Positions 8,931 through 63,390 of a DNA stretch of 64,000 bases are shown one piece after another (position 1 is the stretch's first letter; each line of letters opens with the position of its first letter). A program made the position numbers and the translations under genes. Under the pieces are notes generated by a model, which worked only from the letters and a program-made list of their open reading frames with translations, was not told the origin of the DNA and made no database searches. The stretch comes from Pavona decussata. Taxonomy: Eukaryota. The stretch covers positions 124,001 through 188,000 of the forward strand of contig CDRNST010000137.1 in the NCBI GenBank assembly GCA_977016875.1. Direction: 5' to 3'.

Positions 8931-11900
8931 CTAAAACAGACAATTGTGCGACAATTAGACTCCAAAACACAAAACAGTGTTCCCCACCAGCAGATAAGAG
9001 TAAGTAGGATTGAAGGCCATTTCCGGGTTGCTTTGAAATTCATTATGAAAGCGAGGCTTCGTACAAAGCTTTTCACGTGAAAAGTAGTTTTGTTTGCATA
9101 TCAATGAAAACTAATTTTCATAATTAAAAAAAATATATCAACAAAGCCTCCCTTTCATATTTGGTTCAAAGCAACTCGGAAATGGCCTATTACAACTTTT
9201 ACAATTTTTCCGAATTTATGCAATTTTCGTAAAATTCTTTCGAAATTCTTGTCTAACCTGAGTATAAGAAGGCCTGACACCCAGGTTAACTTCTGTCTGA
9301 CATCTTATGAATTTATAGATTTGCAAACTTTCAACAGCGGTGGACGAGAACAGCGAAATAAACCAAAAGTGTGAAAAATGCAATTCCAGAAATTTGATTG
9401 GCCTAGCGGCCATGGTATATGAGCCATTATAATCCATCAAATATTTTCGCTCGCGCGCGATTGGTCTAAACGCCTCACGTGACCGAATATACCCCAGCTA
9501 AAACTGGGGAATATCCGATGATATTCCCCAAGTGATATTCCCCAATTTCAAAAACTTCAAGGCGCGTCTTGTTTACAATTAAAATTAATGTCAAGATGGG
9601 GGAACGGTTTGCTTTTGTGACAGAAGGAGAGATAAACCTGCTGGTCGATAAAGCAGTATCAGAAAACAACATACGCTCTCAACGTTTTTGACGGTCAACT
9701 GTTCTTAAACGAAATGTTCAAATACTCAAGCTCGTTGCTACATGTTGCGAAAAATATTTGAAGGATAATAACCACAATAGCCTCCATTTGGCTTTAAAAA
9801 TATGCTCAGATATTTGTCTGCGGACATTATCTGCTCCTCAAAGCTCACAGTTTTCCGCTTCTCGGAACAGATAATGTCCGCAGACAAATATCTGAGCATA
9901 TTTTCGCGCCAAATGGCGGCTATTGTTTATTTATACCATGCCCAAGGAATAGCGACCATTAAATTGTCTTATGGTTGTTCTTACAAAGCGAAATCAGCAA
10001 GATCTAGCAATATTTCCTGATTGTGTTTAATGAACAATCATTCCACTCGGGCTTGTTGGAGATGAGATGATTATAGCCAACTCGATGCTAAGCTCCTCGT
10101 TGGCTATCTAGTCATCTCCTATCCAACGCGCGTTCGTGGAATAAATTAGGCTGATTTAGCAACAGAACGGGAACGTCAGTTGACAACGGCGCGCGCATCA
10201 AGAATGCCCAAATATAGTCGAAATAGACTCGTGTCCAGACTATTCCGCGAGCTCTCGCGTCCTCAAATGACGTTCTGTTGCTAAATAGCCAAAGACTGTA
10301 AAATACCTTGTCTGCAGGTGTCCTCAGGTACCATCCACATGTGTCCGTACTTCAGTTTGTTCAGAGAGGTGTATGGACGGCCCCTCGGTGTTTTCAGGTC
10401 CATGTACTGCTCAGCATTGCAATCGCCACACATGCCGCACGTACGGTTGAAAAAGAACGGAGAAACACGAACGTCAACCTGCCAAGAAAAAAGGCACAGA
10501 TATTAATATGGATATAGTAAAGATAACTTTTTATACTTATCGTACACTCTGCGTTGCCTACTTATATTTAGGATTAAGCAATCACGATTGCTTTGACTGT
10601 CAAAAGTGGCGCAGAAATTTCACCAGGGAAGGCTATGTTCCTAAATACAGAGATTTGATAATTGATACCTTTTGCAAACATTGTTACATTGCTTTCAAAT
10701 CATCCTGCAATACATAGCTGAATACGGTAAATAACAAATTATTAAGGTTCTTTCTTCAGCCCACCAATTCATCGTTAATTCTCATGCTCGGCGCCCCTTT
10801 TCGTTCAAAAGAGGCCTCTTAAATCACCAAAGGTACAATAAATGACATTCGGAGGAATAAGCTCTCCACTGGCCAACTTAGGAAAACCGGATTTTAGAGC
10901 CAAGGTTGGCTTGTTTTAGTCTACAAATTCAATAAAAAGAGAGGTCTAGGATAGGAGGGATGGGGGGATGGGGAAGGGGGGTTATGAATACCTTGTTTCC
11001 TCGAACCATCAGCACTTGCAAATGTTCACAGAACACGTGCAGTTCTTGCTTCTCTGGGATCTCCACAATGGTGGCAACGGACTTAAGCTGGAATGTCCGT
11101 TTTGGCATATTGATTATAGCTCCATTAACCTACAAAATAACAACATCCGTGGTTTGAACATTTCAATAATCGCATTTTCTGTCAACTTTCAACCCAGGCG
11201 GTGGGAATTAGCTCATTTGACGCTTGACACAAGTTCAGCGAATGAATTCCTAATATTTTTTTCTAAGCACACTTTCTGAGAATTTGAAGGTACGTGAGCA
11301 TCTACTAACTACTTTTAAAATTCATCTGAGAAGAAAAGTTATACTAACTGGAGATCTGAAATCAGTTCATGGGAATTTGCTATTTTTTGTCTCCTTTGAA
11401 CTTGCCTACGCACCGCAAATTTGACAAGCGATGAACTTTTAACCGTTGCCATTTGGCAAATTAATTTTGTTGATAAATACATGGCATGTATCTTTTCGTC
11501 AACTTTTTGACGGCGTCCATTTCTACCGACCAATCAAAATACACGAACTGGCGAGAAAGATTTGATTGGCCAGTTGAAACTGAAGCCATCAGAAAGTTGT
11601 CAAAGAGATGTCAAAAACTAATGACGAAAACTTTATGGTGGATATAAGAAAAATTACATTTTGAATAGCGGCTGAAAGATTTAAATACAAGGAAGACCAT
11701 TGAGCAGCTGCGAAAAGAAAGCCTGACAAAACATTCAGGCTTGAACGGGATTCGAACCCATGATCTCTGCGATGCCGGTGCAGTGCTCTATCAACTGATC
11801 TTATGAAACATATATTTTGAACTGCAGATGGAAAATTAAATAGAAGAAAGATCCTCGCCGGTCAGTGCACAACTCAAGCAGTTGTGAAAAGAAAGCCTGA

Positions 11901-14900: not shown

Positions 14901-17900
14901 GTTCTGTGATTGGTTAGCAAAACTTGTGTCACTTTCTCAACCAAAGAGAAGCAAGACCAAGACCAATCAGGTCGCACGCGTTTTCCCGCGCTTGGCGTCG
15001 GTTACAAGCATTGCTTTGAGTTTTGATTGGTTCATTGATCTGTTTACGTGTGTTGTGATTGGCCAGAGGACGTACTTTGGTTTTACGACACTCAAATGAA
15101 AACCGCTGAATACCAATAGACATCCAAAATCGCGCGCATGTTTACATGCGAGATGGACTTTGGGATAATTTAAGTGTACCCGAGTTGCAAGCAAGGAATT
15201 ATGGAAACGTAGGTACTTTCAAAGTCTCCCAAACTCCTTAGTGCTTACATCAAGTTATGCAAGCATAAAGTTTGTTAAAAAAAAAAAATAGACGCCAAAC
15301 AAATGTCATGTGGCATCATAGCCGTGTCATATTATCTCGTAAAAAATGTAACGATTAACAAACAAGAAACGCTTTTCTAGAGTTATGGTGATAGCTGAGG
15401 CCCTGTTAGAGGTAAGGGGGAGGGGGGTCTGACTTATCTCATCCCTCTATGGCTGAAGACAGTTATGCCTACAATTAGTTTGTTACCTAACCCTTAACCC
15501 CGAAACCCCTAACAGGCCTCATTCATGTAATCTTCACTTGTTTCCCTGTAATAATAATCACGGTACATGAACTGTACACTTACTTGGATGCGGTATTGCT
15601 GACAATCCTCGCCAAACTTCAAGTGGAACCTAGCTTCAGCTCCACTGATCACGTGACTGGTAATGCAGACTTTCCTTAGCCATGGCAACATGTTGTGCAT
15701 ATCAACAGTGACGTCAGTTTGCATGTTGTTTACGTCATGCGTTATGTGGGTTTCAATCTTCTTTTCTGGTGTTGTTCCCACCAACGACAGGTCTGCTTTC
15801 CATGTTTTGTATTCATCATTGAAACGGTCGCCCTGGCCAAACTGAAAAGAGAAAATTGAAGTAGATCTTTAAAGCAAGTTACTTCACCTATTTAACAAGG
15901 AAAATCTGAATAGACAAAATTTCGTTGTAATAATCTGCAGTTTACCAAACACACACGCCTCAATGAACGCAATGGTACTTGGTGTATATCAACGAAAAGT
16001 GGATAACGATTAAAATTCGACGGGATTCCTGAGCAACAATTTTCCCAGCAAAAGCTGAAATAAAACCAAAGTTGAGCTTAAATTTTACGAAAATCAAATT
16101 CTAAGCCAGTCGGAATTTAAAGAGAACAAACTGTTCAAAGAACAAATTTAAATTGCATATGATGACCTTATAATCTGCCCATCGGCTTGAGCCATTTATG
16201 CATCAGTGATCATTCGAATGGGCATTAACTTGTAGCATAACTTCTACTTTAAATTAGAGCGGTTTCCAATTGAGTGTCGTAACACCAAGACCAAAGTAAT
16301 TACTCTGGCCAATCGCAACAGATGTAAACAACACAACGGGCCAATCAGAATTCGAAGCAAATACATGTAACCGGCGCCAAGCGCGGGAAAACGCGTGCGG
16401 CGAAAACACGATTGGTTTCGGTTTGGATTTCCATTGGTTGATGAGGTGGCGCGAATTTCGTTAACCAATCACAGAGCGTAGCAATGCAAAACCAAAGCAA
16501 ACGCGAAATTACTTTCTACGCAATTGAAAACCGCTCTACATACGATCTTCTAAATTCCAGTGACTTAGAGTCGATTTTCATAAAGCTTTCGTTAATTTGT
16601 GCGTGTACTTCACCTTGAACTGGATCTTCGTAGCTGGATTTACGCCTGGTTTGATAAAGACGTTGTACTTGCTTGGACCACAGAATGGATAAACACGTTT
16701 ATCAGGTTGTGACTGCTCAATATATTCACCTCTTAAACACACGTCCAGACCAAGTATCTGCTCGCCATAACACACCTCCTGACAGACAAAAATATTGATA
16801 ATAAAATACTTTATTCCTTTCTAATTGCCTTTATATTGTCTTGTATAAGGGCTACGTTTTGACATTGAATTTTTAAAACAAAGTTATCTACGCACAGAAG
16901 GGCACTTACAGTACAGGACTCAGCCCGATTAAGCTAATCCTGGGTTAACGTGGAGTTTGATTCGAGTCTACTTTTAAATTAATTAAGATTCTTCAAAAAG
17001 ATTTTGTGCCCCATGTTTAACTTAGACCTTTCTCTACCATTAGCTTTAACTTAACTTATAAACACTTTTTTAACGAACGAGATCAAAACCTCGGTTAAAT
17101 TTTAATCGGGGATAATCGTTAATCGGCTTTCGAACACCGGTCCCAGGAAATGCTAAAAGTCTGTAACATTGCTCGTTATTTAAGATTTCATTGGTTGCCA
17201 TGAACGCGAGCTGGTGAATATTTGAATGTTGCAATGAGAAAAGTTAAAAGTTTTAACTTTTTTCATGGCCAGATTCAAATTTTTCACCATGTGCCAAAAC
17301 GAAGAAATCTGAGGCGGTGAAAATATAAAAAATGTGTCTAAAAATATATCACAAATTCAAATAAAAAGCAAAGCAAGAGAGAGCATTAATTTAGCGGTCA
17401 TCATTGCTAAGATACATGTAGCTCAAAACGTTTCCGATTATATCGGCTGATTTCTGCCAATGTAATTATAGATTTTTTTCTGATTCATTGGACAAATTAA
17501 TAAATAATTGAGACTTACGCTGGTGTTTGTGTGATGTCGCTTTACAGTGAACACGGACTCATCGCTCCTGTTCGGTCTCAAGCAAACTTTCTCGCCAACT
17601 GGTGTAATAAACACGATCTTCATGTGTCGTGGATGCAATCTATCCTGGCTTGGAATATCATCTAGAGGCAAGTCAGTCACATATCTCCATTTTTCTTCAT
17701 AGCCAACTTGGGGCTCGATGTCTTCGATCATCTTCTTAAACAGCGTTACTTGCTCTGTGTTCATGGGTGCGGTCGTTTTTGTCCATTCTGTGGGGTTCCT
17801 GGCTGTATCAGTTGGATGAATAAACACAACTGTGGCCAGACGAATGTGGCGTGGACCTTTGACGTACGTAATCTTGAAGAGTTTTGGATAACGCTCATCC

Positions 17901-20900
17901 ACTACAGTCTCCAGACAACCTTTAGAATTTGGCTTAACCTGGTAAACAATTGCTCGAATTAGATGAATTAGATCATTACACAACACTCTAGGGTGAAATG
18001 ATGGAATGCATCTTTGTTTACAATTTGTCCAAACATTTTAACGTTCAATATTCTGAATAGATATTATATTATATTATTATGATATGATTATACGATAATT
18101 ATATAAGTGCAGGGTTTTATTTTTCTCTCTTGGCAGAAGTGAACATAAGCCAACTGGATAGTGATAGCTCCAGCGGGCCAATGTGTTCTTGTTCTGTCGA
18201 TTTCTTGAGATAAAAACGTCCGACAGCTTGCCACTTCATTTGGCCAGGACTAGAACTTGTGATGACTTACGTTTAATTTGATCGAGCTCAAATGCGCACG
18301 AGGCCAAGAAAGTTGCTCAAACTATTTATTTATTGGTGCGGACGCAAGGGTGCGTCTCCTTGTAAGTCCCTTAAGCCAAAGTTTATTCAAGAGTATCAAC
18401 CTCGTTTCCAGGGTCTCTCCTCTTCGTGAGAGAACCTGGGAACGAGGTTGCCTCACTATCGAGCTTTTCACAGGGAAGGCCTAAGGCCTAGTACTCAGGT
18501 TACCAGGGGTTTGGCATATGTAACGCAAATTGTGTGATCATCAGTTGTGTCTGGAAACTAGCCGGTAAACATTACCTTCACATATCCTTTTCCAGGAATA
18601 TAAAGCTTGACAAACTGGCGATTCCTGCCGATAAACATCACCGTGAAGACAGTGGGTTGGTCGCCCAGGATCAGCTCATTTTGTTCATTAACCGACAAAT
18701 ATTTTCCTTCGCGCGTTTTCAGCGTCCAGGTGGCATAACGGTGGTCACGATGTGTTTGTGTAACCTGCATCAGAAAAAAGAAAGTGTTTCCATCAAGTCA
18801 ATGAACGTTCTCATTGAGGCAAAATAACTTTTGAACGTCAATCCACACATCCATACACTAAGGATATGAATAAACCTGGGTTTGAGGCTAAAGATTAACC
18901 GTTGCCAGGGTACAGACAGTAAAATATACTTAAACTACGCAGAAAAAAGCTGTTCTTTTTCTTGTGCATGAAATACTCCCGTATTTTCATCTAAAACACA
19001 GAAGAAAAGATGAAATATTGCACAATTGCTGAAGCTGCAACCCATTTGTCTCGACATCCGAAGCCAAATACACGTATTAGAGTAGAGTCATTGAAAACAA
19101 GGATTAACAGTTAGTTTTGAGTTTCCCTTGATTCCCAGATATCATTCCACTTTATAAAGTCATAATTAAGGTGGCATGGATAGTTCAAGTTGCTTTAAAA
19201 GCACTGTAATAGTATAACCGGGGAAAACTGCTGTCAGTTCGTGCAGCGGCGAGAAGGTCAAATTATGGAGTCTCGTAAAATCACTATTCCACTGTGTGAT
19301 CATACCTCAAATAGTTCAGATATTCAAACCATTCAGACCACTCACACGGTACCATTGAATTTTCCCAATTGGCCCTCTTATCAGAACAAATATAAACAAC
19401 AATAAAGACAACGTATATACCTTAGACAAATCGAAATATTCTTTCGTGAATGTCGCCACTTCTCCGATTTCCAATCCATCCAGTGGTGTGCTCTGGTAAA
19501 GTGACTGCCAGTCACTTGATTGTCCCGGGACTGGTTTGGTGTACATCAGGAAGGTGTAGCCTTGTTTTCTGCCAAGGAAAGGAAACATCAACAAAACGCA
19601 TCGTGAAGAAGTCAAATCTTGACTAGCAGGACAGTTAATTTAGCTACAATTAGTAGGCGGAATATTCTGTCGGCTATTATTACTGGCACGTTAATAAAAT
19701 CGTTCGTTCATTCGTTCGTTCATCTCAGACTCTCGAAAACTGTTCACGAAAAGCCGACTTTACTATGAGTTTTCACCCAAGGAAACTGGCTTTCATGTGC
19801 AGGAAAGTTACAACAACCAATCACTTGTTTCAAGAAGCTTCAGCAGTTGTAACTGTTTACGTTTAGAATACTTAACGTCCGATTGTCTTCCAGAATTTCC
19901 ATGTATGTTTGGAGTGTCTAAAACGTTTTTTAATTGTCAAGTGTAAAAAATCATACATGAGAAATATGTACAGAAAAGAGAGAGACAGAAAAAACGGAAA
20001 GTTGAGTTTTTATTTCACGAAGCGTATCACTAACAATTAAACAAAAATAATGTAAAGATAGTTGGATGCCCACCACAGCATTATTAGTTTTTAAAAAGGT
20101 TTGGTGGGTGTAGAAAAAACAATTCAGAATTCAAAACAAACACAAACGAATGAAACAGAACAACAATGGAACTGTTCTGACAGTTTTAAGGAAAAATAAC
20201 AAAATAAGCTTGACTGCTTTTTTTTTTTACAAAAACTAACTCAACTATTTGAATTTTTATTGGAGCAATACCATTTTCCTTTCTTTCGGCTAAGCGATAA
20301 CGCTTCTCTGGAACTCTTTCTTTTCTTTAGTTACCGCCAAACGTACAAAGACCGATCAAAAATTGCTTTAGCTGGTTTTAACTAAGGGTTAAAACACTCT
20401 AAATGTTTACTTACTCTGTCGAGAAAATCTGCTGTTTGTGTTGTGGCAGATCAACCTCTGTGGTGTAACTGCGCTGTTTGATGTCGCACTGTACTCTGCC
20501 ACCCATCCTAGCTGTAATATTGATATCTACCTTCATCTTGCTGCCGGTCTCCAGTTGAGGCAGACAGATCTTCATTTTACCCCACATGGAATGTAGAACA
20601 CTGCAAAACAAGTTAGACAAACAAAGTTCGTACAGGTACAGGCTTTAGGACTTGGACCTCCTTTAAGAGGGCTTTTTTTCACGATTGGGTTCCCTGGATA
20701 CTTCCACTACTCATACAGATCATTAACGTTCAAAAACTCATTAATAATTCATAAGCCCATCGACCTATCAAATGGTCGATAATACACCACGTGCAGTGAC
20801 TTTATGTCGATAAACCTCCTACTTATTAGTATGTGGTGTATTAGGCTGCTGATAAAACACTCCTCATTACTATGCGGTGTTTTTCTCGTATGCTAATTTC

Positions 20901-48331: not shown

Positions 48332-48804
48332 TTACCCTCTTAAGGCTCTAATGCCATTGTTCCCTCGCTCAAATCTGCTAATTCTGTCCTTAATCCACGG
48401 CGTCAACACCGTTAAATTAGCATAGACACCGTATTTGTTCGGCAAAGCACATTGTTCACCCCACGAAACTAATCCAGCCGCGTAATGGCGTCCGCACTTC
48501 GTACAGACCAGCGGACCACCACTGTCGTATTCACACGCATCAATTCCTCCCTCGGGATATCCCGCGCACATTGCAGTGTCATGAATGGTTCCGTTGTACG
48601 ACTTTTCCAGGTTACACACTTCGCGTGACACAACTCTAACTATAGTCTCACGTAGTATGTCTGGTTGGGTACCATTCCACTGAGTATGGCCCCAGCCCGC
48701 CACATAGCACTCCTCATTTGGCGCGAAAACGTCATCTGGACGAGGCAAGCACAGCGGCTGGACGTAATCAGTGAACACAAGTGGTTTGTCGAGCTTGAGA
48801 ATGG
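48332..48804 (-). CDS. Protease last exon: Ser195
   Basis: [26 protein letters not shown]; TAA at 48332. Confidence 0.94.
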
Positions 48805-51800
48805 CTGAAATACAACATGAGATTTCCATGTTAACACCTAAAATACCTCAGGTCATGGCTATTCTTACCAGTTCTTGGAGTGCAGAGACATGCAAAAATT
48901 GACGATAAAAACCGGCGTTTCGGTGTATTCAGGACGCCATTGTCAAGGAGAAATTAAAAAAAAAAAAAAAATTTCTCCTTGACAATGGCGTCATGAAGAC
49001 ACCGAAACGTCGGTTTTTATTATTGGTTTTTATCGTTAATTTTTGCATGTCTCTGCATTACCAGTTCTTGGAGTGAATAAAATAAACACAATATTTTCAC
49101 AAAAAGTGATACAGTTTTTCGAGCCCGGCTAAGTGGCCCATAATCTCAGAACTTAATCTGGTTTATTTTCCATGAAAGGGCCGCTGGACCCCACAGGGTG
49201 GGGGTCGGGTAATTAACCAGGAATGACTGTTTCCCTGAGTAGATGGGATGCTTGTTCCCTTTAGCATTCAGTTGTCGTCAATACCCATTTCTACACCTGG
49301 GTAGAGTCCGAGACAATGTGGGCCAATATTTTTTGTTTAGGAAAGAACACACTGACAATGAGGACAATGTAGAGACAGACCAAGCTGGTTCACATTCGGT
49401 ACCTTAACCCCTGTCACTCCCAGGAGTGATCAATGTGTAATTTCTCCTTACATTATCAATACATTGCCGACCAGACAGGTGATGAAAATAAAGACAATCA
49501 TCAACTAGGTGATATTGTTTTATGTAACACCAAATTGTGTGAACTAACTTTAAAAAGAATTGTATGACAGTTAGTTGGGAGAATTAACATTCAGATAATG
49601 GGAGTGAAAGGGTAATAGACAAAAGATCTGTAGATAAAGGGCCTGGTAGTCACAGAAATTGTATACAGACTCAGTGGCCCCTGTGCTAAACTCAGTGGCC
49701 TAGTACAAGGTACACCGTGCTCTAACATTGAACGCCACCTACCGCTATACATGCAATACTAAGGCCAAACAGATAATTTTCATGGAAACAAAATAAAACA
49801 CTTAAATGCCATAACAGAGTAATGGCTGGACGTTATTTGAGTATTGTAATACTTACAGATATCGTTCAAGGGCGGCGTATCGTATATCCCTTCAAACCAC
49901 ATGGATTTGTAGTTTTCGTGTATTGTGATGTTCACAACTTTACGTCTTTGCTCAAAGCGATCATCCCTTTCCTTCAGATGGTGATCTCCAAGAACCGCCG
50001 TCCAGTCTGCTGGATTACTGGACGTAAAAGGGTCTAAACAGAATAAAGAAAACTTGGAACCTAAACATGTCAGGAGTAAATAAAAAATAACAAAAACAAC
50101 AATGGAACAGTGTGATGGAAAACTTTTGATGGCGAGACGAGAGGAGAATGGGGACGAGGTGTAACGCGGACAATATTCTTTCCCTTGGTTGAAACAATTA
50201 AAAGATCCATAGCCTCGATTAAGGGAAAAACAAAAGTCTACAAGATAAAAATACTGCTGAATGTTAAAACGTTTGCCTCTAATTATCATTAAGTAAAAAA
50301 AGCCCAAAACAAACAAAATGGAGGTGGTTGTAAGGGGGGGGGGGGGTGGGGGTTGCTCTGGTTCAAGCCGTTGTTGTGGTAAAGCAAACAAACAAATAAA
50401 ATAACCAAAAAAGGAAGTTTATTGCTTTATAGGTTGAACTGTGAGGTTAACAAGCAACGTGAGTTCTGACGGTGTAAAATGTTTCTGAATTCTAAACGTA
50501 AGTGAACTGCGCTATCGAGTTGTACAATTGGTTGGGAACATTGTCCGATGAAATCTTTATTAAATCCAGAAGATATACTATTTTTCTTGTGATTGTAAGA
50601 ATGTGAGTCTCAGCAGGAAGAATAATGGTTGCTGGCATCGGTTTCCATTACTTTTCAGGACTTAAACTTTGACGCATCATTACCACTGTTTATCAGTTCA
50701 TACAACAACAACGGTATCCTACAAATCCTACGTCAACTGACAGCATTATCGTTCGCGGTCCTTTGCAGTTTTCACGTCTATCCAACAAATGCCTAAACAT
50801 TGGCGAACAAGGTATGGTTATTCTCTCGATCGAACTGTAATCAATATGCGGCTTTTACCTTATTGTAGCTTATAAACTGACGATAAATATTACAATACTC
50901 ACTAAAACAATGGGCTGTTGTCACTATCCACGTGTTTGATATGACTGCGCCGCCGCAGTAGTGACTTCCTTTAAACAACAGCGCCGCCTGCCATGGCCAC
51001 TTTCCTTGGGAACTCTGGGAGCCACCCACAATCCTTTTCACCCGTCGGCCTGTAGTGTTCTTGTTTCTTATCTTTCGGAGGCCGCATTCTTGAGGAAAGA
51101 CTAAAAACAACGGACATATCAGCTGGTATGGAAGCCGCTAAACGGTGTCAAAAACGACTTAACGCTTTTGGTATATAGAAGACCCCTATTTTATCTACTT
51201 TAATATTTCGCTTTATTATTAAGCAGGCTCTTTCATTACGGCTTTATTTAGTTTTTTCATATTGAATGGTATGTATTACAGGATAAGATTGCTAAAAAAG
51301 ACAGCTTCGCGCTTTAAAAACTATTAGTAAATCAACTATGATAGAAGGTTACGCAGTTGAATCAAAAAATCAAATGTGGGAGAACGCATCATTTCGAGAA
51401 CGTTACAAGGATCGCAAAAAAAACAAAAAAAAAAAAAAAAAAAAAGCGAAACCGGACCCTGAACACGACAGGAAACTACTGCCAACTGCTTGATTGGATT
51501 TTCATTTCACAGTGCTAATACATAGGGCCGTGTCTACTCACGGGTCCTCGTGGTCTAAGGCTAGCAATCCTGACATAACGTTTGTGTCGTCAAAGGAAGT
51601 TTATTAGAAAAAGTAACTACAACAAAGGTAGTAAAAAAAAAGACGTACTGGAATCCATAGAGGGTGAAAACGACGATGGCCGTGCTGAAAAAGAAAGAAG
51701 AAGAAAAAAATGACGAGCAGGTTAATGATAGGTTCTTTCAGCGTTGCTTTGTAATAAAGGAGTTTCTTAAAAAAAGCTTTACCTGTCGTGTGTTGTGGTG

Positions 51801-61431: not shown

Positions 61432-62172
61432 TGGTTTCCAAATTATCGCAGGATCGCAGTTGATCACAAACGATCGCAACAGTTCGGTCACGGTTGTATA
61501 TACAAGCGATCGTAAAGCGTCAACAGCACAGAAAGATTCCGCACAGCCTCCAACATTAATTACACCTGCCCCCACTATCATATTAACCCTCTTCCTAAAA
61601 CGGCAAGCGTGCTGAGTAGAGTTTGAGTCGCAAAATGTGAACGTAATTAATGTATGAGGGTGTGCGAAAATCTTGCCGAATAACTTTAAGAAGGAAGTCG
61701 AAAGGTTGCATTTCACGCCTGGAAGTTGTGAATTTGGAAAAAGTTGCTCAAATGGCTCGATTATTTTTGTAATAAAAGCAAAAAAAAAAAAAAAAAAACT
61801 GAAATCTCCATCAAATAGAATTTTCATACGAAAGAAGTCGAAATTTTGCATTTCACACCTGGGAGCTGGAAATTGGAAAAAGTTGCTCGATCTTTTCATA
61901 TCAAAAGTTATTGTTTTTAAAAGAAACAGCCGAAAAATACCTAGAATCTCCATGAAAAGGAAGCCTGCTACGAAAGGAAAGAGAAGCAAACATTTCGAAA
62001 TATTATAATCAGAATAAGTAAGTGGACTCCTTGTTTGCTTAGTCAAACAAAATTAAAAGGACATTGAAAACAAAGCTCTTTACACCGCAGAGTATTAACA
62101 TGTTTGTTTCTTAGAAACTGAACGCAGGTTGAAAAAATCCTTTCCGCGTTGAAATCAGATCGGTAAGAATCG

Positions 62173-63390
62173 ATGCAAACAAAAACAAAATGGAAACCAA
62201 TGTCTTGGACTCGGTACAGAAAGACGTTTGCTATCCTTAGCATTTTTCTAGGAAGCTTGCTCGTAATCGTTCAACAATGGCTTCTGCAAAACAAAGTTTC
62301 AAGAGATAATGAACTTCATCATCTTTCGATCGTGAATGGACAATGGAAAGAAAATTACGCGAACAAACGCCGCTTGAAGGTCGTTTTATTTTACACTACA
62401 TTATTCGGTCGCTCACCATGGCCTGGTCTCGCAAATGACTACAATTTCACGCACTGGAACAACATTGGCTGTCGTGTACAAGCGTGCAGAATAACATATA
62501 ACAGAAGCGAACTCTCGAACAGCGATGCAGTGTTATTCCATGGCAGAGATTTACCAGATGTATTACACATGAGGAACATTGTAAAGAAAAAACCTTCAAA
62601 ACAGCGATGGATTTACTTCATGCATGAAAGTCCAAAATTCACCTACTACGACCCGGCTTTGTACAACGGCTTCTTCAACTGGACGATGTCGTATCGGAAA
62701 GATTCGGAGTTTTTCGTACCTTATCGAACCTACACCCGACTGGAACCCGACGAGATTGCACTCAGACAGACGGTGACTACGAACTATGCCAACGGTAAAG
62801 ACAAATTGGTTGTTTGGATTGTAAGTCACTGCGGAGGACTCAGAGAAGAATTCGTAAGAAAACTAACAAAATACATAAAAGTTGATGTTTTTGGATCATG
62901 TTCAAGGCGTTTCAATCAAACTGAAACTTGTCGGAGGTCGTCTCCGGCCTGTCGCCAAAAACTACAGCGCTACAAATTCATCATTGCGTTTGAAAATTCC
63001 TTCTGCGTTGACTACATAACAGAGAAATACTGGTATACACCGTTTGAACACAATGTCGTTCCAGTTGTGATGGGAGGCGCCTCGTATGACTCACAGCTCG
63101 CCATTCCCGGCTCATTTATTAACGTGGCAAATTTCCTGTCAGTCAAAGCACTTGCTAATTATTTACTTTCCTTGGACTCAAACGATAAAGCTTACAACGA
63201 ATATTTTTGGTGGAAAAAGGAGTTTAAACCCGTGCTACCCGAATCTTGGACTTGTAAGATATGTGCGGCTTTAAATGACGATTCCTTGCCAGCTAAAGTT
63301 TATAACAATATGGACGATTTGTGGGGTGAGGAAAAGGCTTGCGGGAAAAACAAAGAAAAAATACAAAAACTTGTTGAGCAACTTGATTAA
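62173..63390 (+). CDS. Alpha-1,3/4-fucosyltransferase (GT10), type II membrane protein, single coding exon, 405 aa
   Basis: N-terminal TM segment (FAILSIFLGSLLVIV); motifs SDAVLFH, HESP, FNWTMSYRKDS, WIVSHC, YKFIIAFENSFCVDYITEK, VPVVMG, YFWWK. The start could be the second Met (62200). Confidence 0.95.
   Translation: MQTKTKWKPMSWTRYRKTFAILSIFLGSLLVIVQQWLLQNKVSRDNELHHLSIVNGQWKENYANKRRLKVVLFYTTLFGRSPWPGLANDYNFTHWNNIGCRVQACRITYNRSELSNSDAVLFHGRDLPDVLHMRNIVKKKPSKQRWIYFMHESPKFTYYDPALYNGFFNWTMSYRKDSEFFVPYRTYTRLEPDEIALRQTVTTNYANGKDKLVVWIVSHCGGLREEFVRKLTKYIKVDVFGSCSRRFNQTETCRRSSPACRQKLQRYKFIIAFENSFCVDYITEKYWYTPFEHNVVPVVMGGASYDSQLAIPGSFINVANFLSVKALANYLLSLDSNDKAYNEYFWWKKEFKPVLPESWTCKICAALNDDSLPAKVYNNMDDLWGEEKACGKNKEKIQKLVEQLD

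Follow-up and report, generated by a model that had tools for sequence, protein, structure and literature searches.

Introduction

Vitellogenins, which are secreted, rank with the most intensively studied lipoproteins of animals, and their plan (N-sheet, helical domain, C- and A-sheets, plus a domain of von Willebrand factor type D) is regarded as fixed. Here we describe a vitellogenin gene of the stony coral Pavona decussata, lying in a 64,000-nt stretch of DNA (hereafter the window; contig CDRNST010000137.1, positions 124,001 to 188,000, assembly GCA_977016875.1), in which two exons, A and B, are found between the open beta-sheet region and a DUF1081-type motif. An earlier note on the window had proposed that these exons encode three similar units of a fascin-like beta-trefoil, added by exon shuffling and perhaps serving to bind glycans, receptors, or microbes in eggs.

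In solved vitellogenins, loops in this part of the chain hold inserts that differ between lineages (phosvitin, a Gln-rich mini-domain, a long helix), and no trefoil is described in the solved canonical structures of vitellogenins and other large lipid transfer proteins (LLTPs) (PMC12214520). Papers on coral vitellogenins give only Vitellogenin_N, DUF1943, and VWD (PMC7303178). In Acropora, a protein kinase domain was reported to have been added by shuffling to a vitellogenin-like skeletal matrix protein; the "Trefoil" named in that work is an unrelated P-type domain of another protein (PMC4890752). In our full-text literature searches, no vitellogenin turned up that is described as having a trefoil or fascin-like domain.

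We propose that exons A and B encode a globular module of about 200 residues, placed where the open beta-sheet domain (PF09172) meets the DUF1081-type motif with which the next sheet starts. Exon A would form the opening one and a half repeats of a beta-trefoil of fascin-like kind, and exon B would supply the remaining six strands. We give this reading as a whole, including the complete trefoil made by both exons, a probability of roughly 60%; its parts are supported to different degrees, as set out below.

Results

Exon-by-exon Pfam scans found Vitellogenin_N, Vit_open_b-sht (PF09172), and then VWD ordered along one strand, which places the host gene among the vitellogenins and LLTPs (Table 1). 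The full domain order is the usual one (Vitellogenin_N, Vit_open_b-sht, DUF1081-type motif, Vit_b-sht_shell, VWD), and exons A and B sit between the last Vit_open_b-sht exon and the exon with the DUF1081-type motif. The Pfam order of the flanking exons thus bears out the placement originally given, between the open beta-sheet region and the LLTP motif, and a direct reading agrees with the two phase 0-0 exons of 63 and 140 codons in coordinates, phases, and peptides. All four module borders are in phase 0, and this symmetry, the pattern looked for in an exon-shuffled module, is kept in orthologs. Phase 0 is also the end phase of the upstream exon, a linker from the open beta-sheet domain to the module, and the start phase of the downstream exon, so that removal of A and B would preserve the frame, as had been claimed.

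Two other LLTP genes of the same genome (C78:620133-623068, L017; C125:558232-561054, L018) provide a direct comparison. In both, the last open-sheet exon is followed by one intron-sized gap and then the equivalent motif exon (LGL/FGL..C ... PFFPL.GP), with 636 bp (C78) and 857 bp (C125) from the end of the Vit_open_b-sht match to the start of the DUF1081 match. The corresponding interval in the vitellogenin is 3.6 kb and holds three exons. No open reading frame (ORF) similar to A or B was found when the C78 and C125 gaps between the open-sheet and motif exons were read through, and A and B match none of the LLTP Pfam models. Because the paralogs have no A or B between the same landmarks, about 200 residues are extra in the vitellogenin, and we are highly confident that A and B are a genuine insert, conserved and missing from the paralogs. 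Beyond the DUF1081 motif, the C78 and C125 genes run on in giant open frames (5002 and 1231 residues open) and are presumably of the apoB/apolipophorin kind; C78:146913-149877 is a third, weak Vit_open_b-sht locus.

Judging by the order of the Pfam models, the insertion interval would be the one in which vertebrate vitellogenins carry phosvitin. We infer this equivalence from model order, because the flanking exons, searched against the PDB sequences of solved LLTPs, yielded no match that could map the insertion.

The module is shared by other corals. An exhaustive HMMER search with exon B against 1.84 billion representatives gave ten matches, nine of which were short exon-level ORF fragments with 52-81% identity to exon B; the tenth (P0009, a 523-residue tandem-repeat protein) was discarded as a spurious repeat match. 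Word-index and profile searches brought the relatives to 28, all of them exon-B fragments. The order of upstream exon, A, B, and downstream exon is kept in at least five other coral contigs (L003, L005, L007, L008, and L010), in which the module adjoins Vit_open_b-sht and VWD exons and the upstream exon is orthologous to that of the window; exon B was additionally found in L004, L006, and L009. For these eight relatives, whose contigs were read, vitellogenin exons lie alongside wherever the contig is long enough to show neighbours. AG/GT borders occur at identical codon positions in every locus, including those of the A-B intron. Between orthologs and the window, the ratio of nonsynonymous to synonymous substitution rates (dN/dS) lay between 0.07 and 0.16 in exon A and between 0.07 and 0.27 in exon B; synonymous sites were nearly saturated (proportion of synonymous differences, pS, 0.57-0.84). 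The low dN/dS and conserved borders in orthologous loci show that A and B are not chance ORF material; they are genuine coding exons under purifying selection.

One database entry, P0007 (81 aa, NCBI), is 70% identical to exon B and is labelled "hypothetical protein, partial [Herbidospora sp. RD11066]"; it comes from a 245-nt contig and most probably represents coral contamination of a bacterial assembly. A peculiarity of the window's upstream exon is seen at 19421-19457: its donor is AAG|gtatat, whereas five other corals share a donor (GAG|gta after ...EIGEVTE) that lies 30 nt further upstream; in the window that ancestral site is mutated. This shift lengthens the linker by about ten residues and keeps phase 0.

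In L005 (GCA_029204205.1), which a table in PMC12250223 assigns to Desmophyllum pertusum, exon B at positions 9865-10283 of MU827828.1 has, compared with the window and L008, an extra base in each of two short homopolymers (TTT in place of TT, CCC in place of CC); these single-base insertions may be assembly errors or real lesions. As a result of these insertions, the vitellogenin is divided into four gene models of 977, 81, 91, and 308 residues, the 81-residue model being "hypothetical protein OS493_034983". Another apparent variant (P0010), considered as an alternative splice from mid-exon B to the next exon, was rejected as a gene-model artefact of the Desmophyllum assembly frameshifts.

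Could exons A and B be an optional cassette, alternatively spliced so that only some vitellogenin isoforms include the module? Their phase 0-0 borders mean that skipping would keep the frame, and the protein collections yielded no protein derived from a transcript that crosses the exon junctions. Those collections are almost wholly genomic ORF calls, however, so missing spliced matches say little. No search of them returned a long annotated protein with the module, for which the split gene models are the visible reason in D. pertusum, and a word-index search for spliced fragments of 213-679 residues, made with the exon-B region of P0002 (a genomic ORF of another species, 388 residues long, in which the A-B intron is read through), returned P0002 itself only. 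Strong purifying selection and the conserved strong splice sites show that the included form matters, and a Desmophyllum gene model probably runs into exon B, since it ends at 9993, at a stop made by the first frameshift inside that exon. We therefore consider optional inclusion improbable.

Fold and family searches were done exon by exon. Exon A consists of a His/Arg-rich linker followed by predicted strands b1-b6, which would make up trefoil repeat 1 and the initial half of repeat 2. The Pfam Fascin model (PF06268) matched exon A at 14.4 bits (E 0.043), below its gathering threshold of 23.1; sub-threshold matches recurred among exon A orthologs (Fascin in six of seven, FRG1 in three of seven). 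The fascin gene proper of this genome scores 84 bits with the same model. A profile of exon A searched against all PDB sequences had a sole match, hisactophilin (1hcd, E 0.32). AlphaFold modelling of exon A with seven orthologs gave a predicted local distance difference test score (pLDDT) of 84.7 and five to six strands. With this model, Foldseek ranks 1-10 were all human fascin-1 (probability 0.82-0.99, and at least 0.91 for ranks 1-9), with a template modelling (TM) score by query of about 0.6, a root-mean-square deviation of 1.7-2.0 Å over 49-52 residues, and 25-28% identity. Fibroblast growth factors, IL-18, ricin-type lectins, and a designed half-trefoil (3ogf) followed. A structural aligner not reliant on Foldseek, run against 48,161 chains, returned nearly all beta-trefoils among its top 50 (best Z 5.0), and a search of the ESM Atlas gave ricin-B-bearing hydrolases and a Fascin/FRG1 cluster (TM 0.54-0.67). 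There is thus good support for exon A encoding one and a half fascin-like trefoil repeats.

These results also bear on whether the segment is ordinary vitellogenin sheet sequence, or non-coding ORF noise, mistaken for a domain. The PF09172-PF09175 region is thinly covered by Pfam in many LLTPs, and the flanking exons likewise have no PDB sequence matches, both of which would suit that explanation. Against it, the paralogous LLTPs of the same genome have no module, dN/dS is about 0.1 across species, and among the 48,161 chains the exon A model matches trefoils and does not match lipovitellin, bee vitellogenin, or MTP. Such a mistake is exceedingly improbable, and the original view that the segment differs from LLTP beta-sheet holds.

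The linker before the first trefoil strand (18735-18764) is His/Arg-rich and variable among corals (HRDHR, RQDR, HHHHR, RRHRHHR, HRHAR). RxxR is present in four of the six orthologs covering it and HHHH in two others; speculatively, this stretch may be a convertase or metal site.

A beta-trefoil is a six-stranded barrel with a hairpin cap. Of its 12 strands in three pseudo-repeats of about 40 residues, five to six are modelled in exon A, and six more in exon B are suggested from sequence only: segments around CLETV, LFKITYV, IRLATVVFI, KIVFIT, KVCLRP, and VFTVKR are strand-like. Two kinds of signal link the exons. In hhalign, the b4-b5 segment of exon A aligned weakly to residues 17-34 of exon B (b8-b9), and MAFFT spontaneously placed the second half of exon A on exon B. 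The motif [VL]F[TK][VI], chosen post hoc, occurs once in A (A39) and twice in B (B20 and B129), and three or more copies arose in 1 of 200,000 shuffles. The three similar units of the earlier note rest on this short repeated strand motif and the weak hhalign match, and the third unit is better parsed, in place of the parsing first given, as the strand HIRLATVVFI, then an excursion of about 63 residues, then three strands. (The MAFFT alignment of P0002 with rows for exons A and B was misaligned and excluded from folding; it serves here to illustrate the internal repeat only.)

Exon B most likely completes the trefoil. The A-B intron would then split repeat 2 between strands b6 and b7, and repeat 3 would carry the roughly 63-residue, helix-containing excursion between strands 9 and 10. 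Cysteines C8 and C119 of exon B are invariant in an alignment of 16 orthologs; they would lie on equivalent strands of repeats 2 and 3, and a C8-C119 disulfide is probable. Two sequons (NRS/NKS and NTS/NSS) are also conserved, and these potential N-glycan sites, together with the cysteines, fit a secreted, exposed domain.

Several results weigh against a complete trefoil with a binding function. All sequence matches to trefoil families are below curated thresholds. The Foldseek E-values for the exon A model (0.3-1.4) are below formal significance for so short a query and, like the best Z of 5.0, count as weak in absolute terms, given a model of just 63 residues; the AlphaFold model may merely echo the fascin-like GKYLS motif. 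For exon B, no Pfam match was obtained in any of 16 orthologs, its profile had no match in the PDB, and a feature search of the ESM Atlas gave no usable match. Its pLDDT was about 30 in the sole model containing both exons (P0002). Finally, no binding motif was identified in the module. The fascin-like character proposed for the whole segment is accordingly upheld for exon A, by the sub-threshold Fascin and hisactophilin matches and the AlphaFold/Foldseek results, and not for exon B, which has no family or PDB match. The P0002 two-exon model itself was discarded, as its mean pLDDT was 43 and the translated intron formed a confident long helix; a fold search with it, returning coiled coils only via the intron-derived helix, was also set aside.

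The exon B results would also suit a composite insert, in which exon A is a trefoil-derived remnant, exon B has an alpha/beta fold of its own, and no complete beta-trefoil forms. The absence of a trefoil-family signal in 16 orthologs and of a PDB profile match, the predicted helix, and the low model confidence all point that way, as does hhalign, which found nothing between exon B and the clear three-repeat trefoil family of the same genome (described below). On the other hand, one and a half repeats, or six strands, cannot close a barrel alone, and exon B has exactly six strand-like segments, two of which repeat the b4 motif of exon A. The trimerising designed half-trefoil among the structural matches (3ogf) makes other completions conceivable, but they are unneeded. 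We regard a composite insert as doubtful and favour completion of the trefoil by exon B.

Exons A and B are single-copy, with a self match only in the 602-Mb genome, and no donor or sister copy in other genes was found in that genome or among the 28 database relatives; a profile search with 16 orthologs likewise found no distant relatives of exon B. Exon shuffling, as proposed in the earlier note, has the symmetric phase 0 borders in its favour, but it is unproven because the exons are single-copy and neither a donor nor a distant relative was found.

Searching the genome with the Fascin model identified a true fascin gene (C176), a match on C87, and six tandem ORFs on C214. The C214 locus (C214:2585756-2680734; L016, L020-L024) holds tandem open frames, at least six in number and each 144-149 residues long, with textbook three-repeat trefoils (LKADNGKYLSR ... 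NIEA ... F, three times) and Fascin scores at or just under threshold. When considered as the donor, this family was rejected: only the GKYLS motif aligned with exon A (probability 47%) and nothing aligned with exon B. The C214 trefoil ORFs are a family of their own.

The most distant relative of the module (L004/P0006), with about 50% identity and the downstream LLTP exon adjoining, comes from sample VOHS20-1_SAMN12856799. The samples numbered directly after it (SAMN12856800-807, PRJNA574146) are Callogorgia delta metagenomes (PMC11535214), and PRJNA574146 also includes Paramuricea metagenomes (bioRxiv 10.1101/2020.02.27.968453). Going by sample numbering, the L004 host is probably an octocoral, in which case the module would be anthozoan-wide.

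Within the A-B intron, a near-perfect inverted repeat of about 23 bp with an 8-nt loop (18388-18448; stem of type aacctcgtttccagggtctctc) may be a piece of an element resembling a miniature inverted-repeat transposable element. Elsewhere in the window, trypsin-like serine protease exons (48335-51137, minus strand) and a 407-residue open frame (62167-63387, plus strand) belong to neighbouring genes unrelated to the vitellogenin module.

Table 1. Exons and domain matches of the vitellogenin gene in the window
Feature	Position	Strand	Details
Exon A	18764-18576	minus	189 nt, 63 codons; borders cag|GTT, AAG|gtaatg; phase 0-0
Exon B	17938-17519	minus	420 nt, 140 codons; borders cag|GTT, AGC|gtaagt; phase 0-0
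Intron between exons A and B	17939-18575	minus	637 nt; gtaatg ... cag borders
Upstream exon	19568-19421	minus	49 codons + 1 base; phase 0 end; without family match
Downstream exon	16778-16614	minus	55 codons, phase 0-0; begins EVCYGEQILGLDVC; LLTP motif, weak DUF1081 match
Last Vit_open_b-sht (PF09172) exon, in open frame	20414-20644	minus	profile positions 241-303 of 303
Vitellogenin_N (PF01347)	exons 36469 to 25558	minus	Pfam, profile positions 1-590
Vit_open_b-sht (PF09172)	exons 24781 to 20414	minus	Pfam, profile positions 5-303
Vit_b-sht_shell	15868-15512	minus	weak Pfam match
VWD (PF00094)	exons 12842 to 10284	minus	Pfam; both profile ends matched

Discussion

A conserved, selected globular insert in a coral vitellogenin would stand as a clear instance of a domain gained by the family. 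The module would be exposed at the surface near the rim of the lipid cavity. Because extracellular trefoils typically bind glycans or proteins, our guess is that it is most likely a ligand-binding appendage (for glycan or protein) on a yolk lipoprotein. QxW is absent from both exon translations, and Pfam RicinB had no match at E up to 10. Non-nutritional roles such as pathogen binding and receptor recognition have been claimed for vitellogenins, and the insert would be a candidate handle for these in animals with eggs that have to cope with microbes and that, in some species, inherit symbionts.

A further-reaching version, that the module is an ancient, anthozoan-wide, complete extracellular trefoil of fascin type on the lipid-cavity rim and acts as a glycan- or protein-binding head, we consider quite unlikely as it stands. 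If true, the binding head would serve, for example, in oocyte receptor docking, yolk packing, or the binding of egg-bound microbes or symbionts, and no LLTP before it would have had a lectin-like domain built in. At least one published coral annotation (that of Desmophyllum pertusum) misses or breaks the module, which is hence invisible to domain surveys. Exon B, without recognisable relatives, is a target for structure determination.

Among known systems, the fascin/hisactophilin/FRG1 group (PF06268, PF06229; PDB 3llp, 1hcd) is among the closest, sharing with exon A the LK..GKYLS strand motif, the second and third strands, and the F-x-V strand. However, these proteins are cytosolic and actin-binding, and fascin has four tandem trefoils, whereas the coral module is single, split by an intron, and sited within a secreted lipoprotein rather than a cytosolic tandem array. 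It further differs in its sub-threshold scores, the predicted repeat-3 excursion of about 63 residues, the two invariant cysteines, and the glycosylation sequons. The ricin-B/CBM13 lectin trefoils are of the same fold class, appear among the structural matches, and are extracellular, but the coral exons have neither their (QxW)3 signature nor a Pfam match. The kinase-bearing LLTP of Acropora involves a different added domain in a different gene, and a trefoil-like module is not mentioned there (PMC4890752).

The host gene shares its domain order with the canonical LLTPs (lamprey lipovitellin, honey bee vitellogenin, MTP, and apoB/apolipophorin). The nearest parallels to the insert itself are vertebrate phosvitin, the lamprey Gln-rich mini-domain, and bee helix 1144-1189, which are likewise lineage-variable loop inserts in the sheets of the lipid cavity (PMC12214520). 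Those inserts are low-complexity or helical, whereas the coral insert is conserved, probably globular and beta-rich, and under purifying selection.

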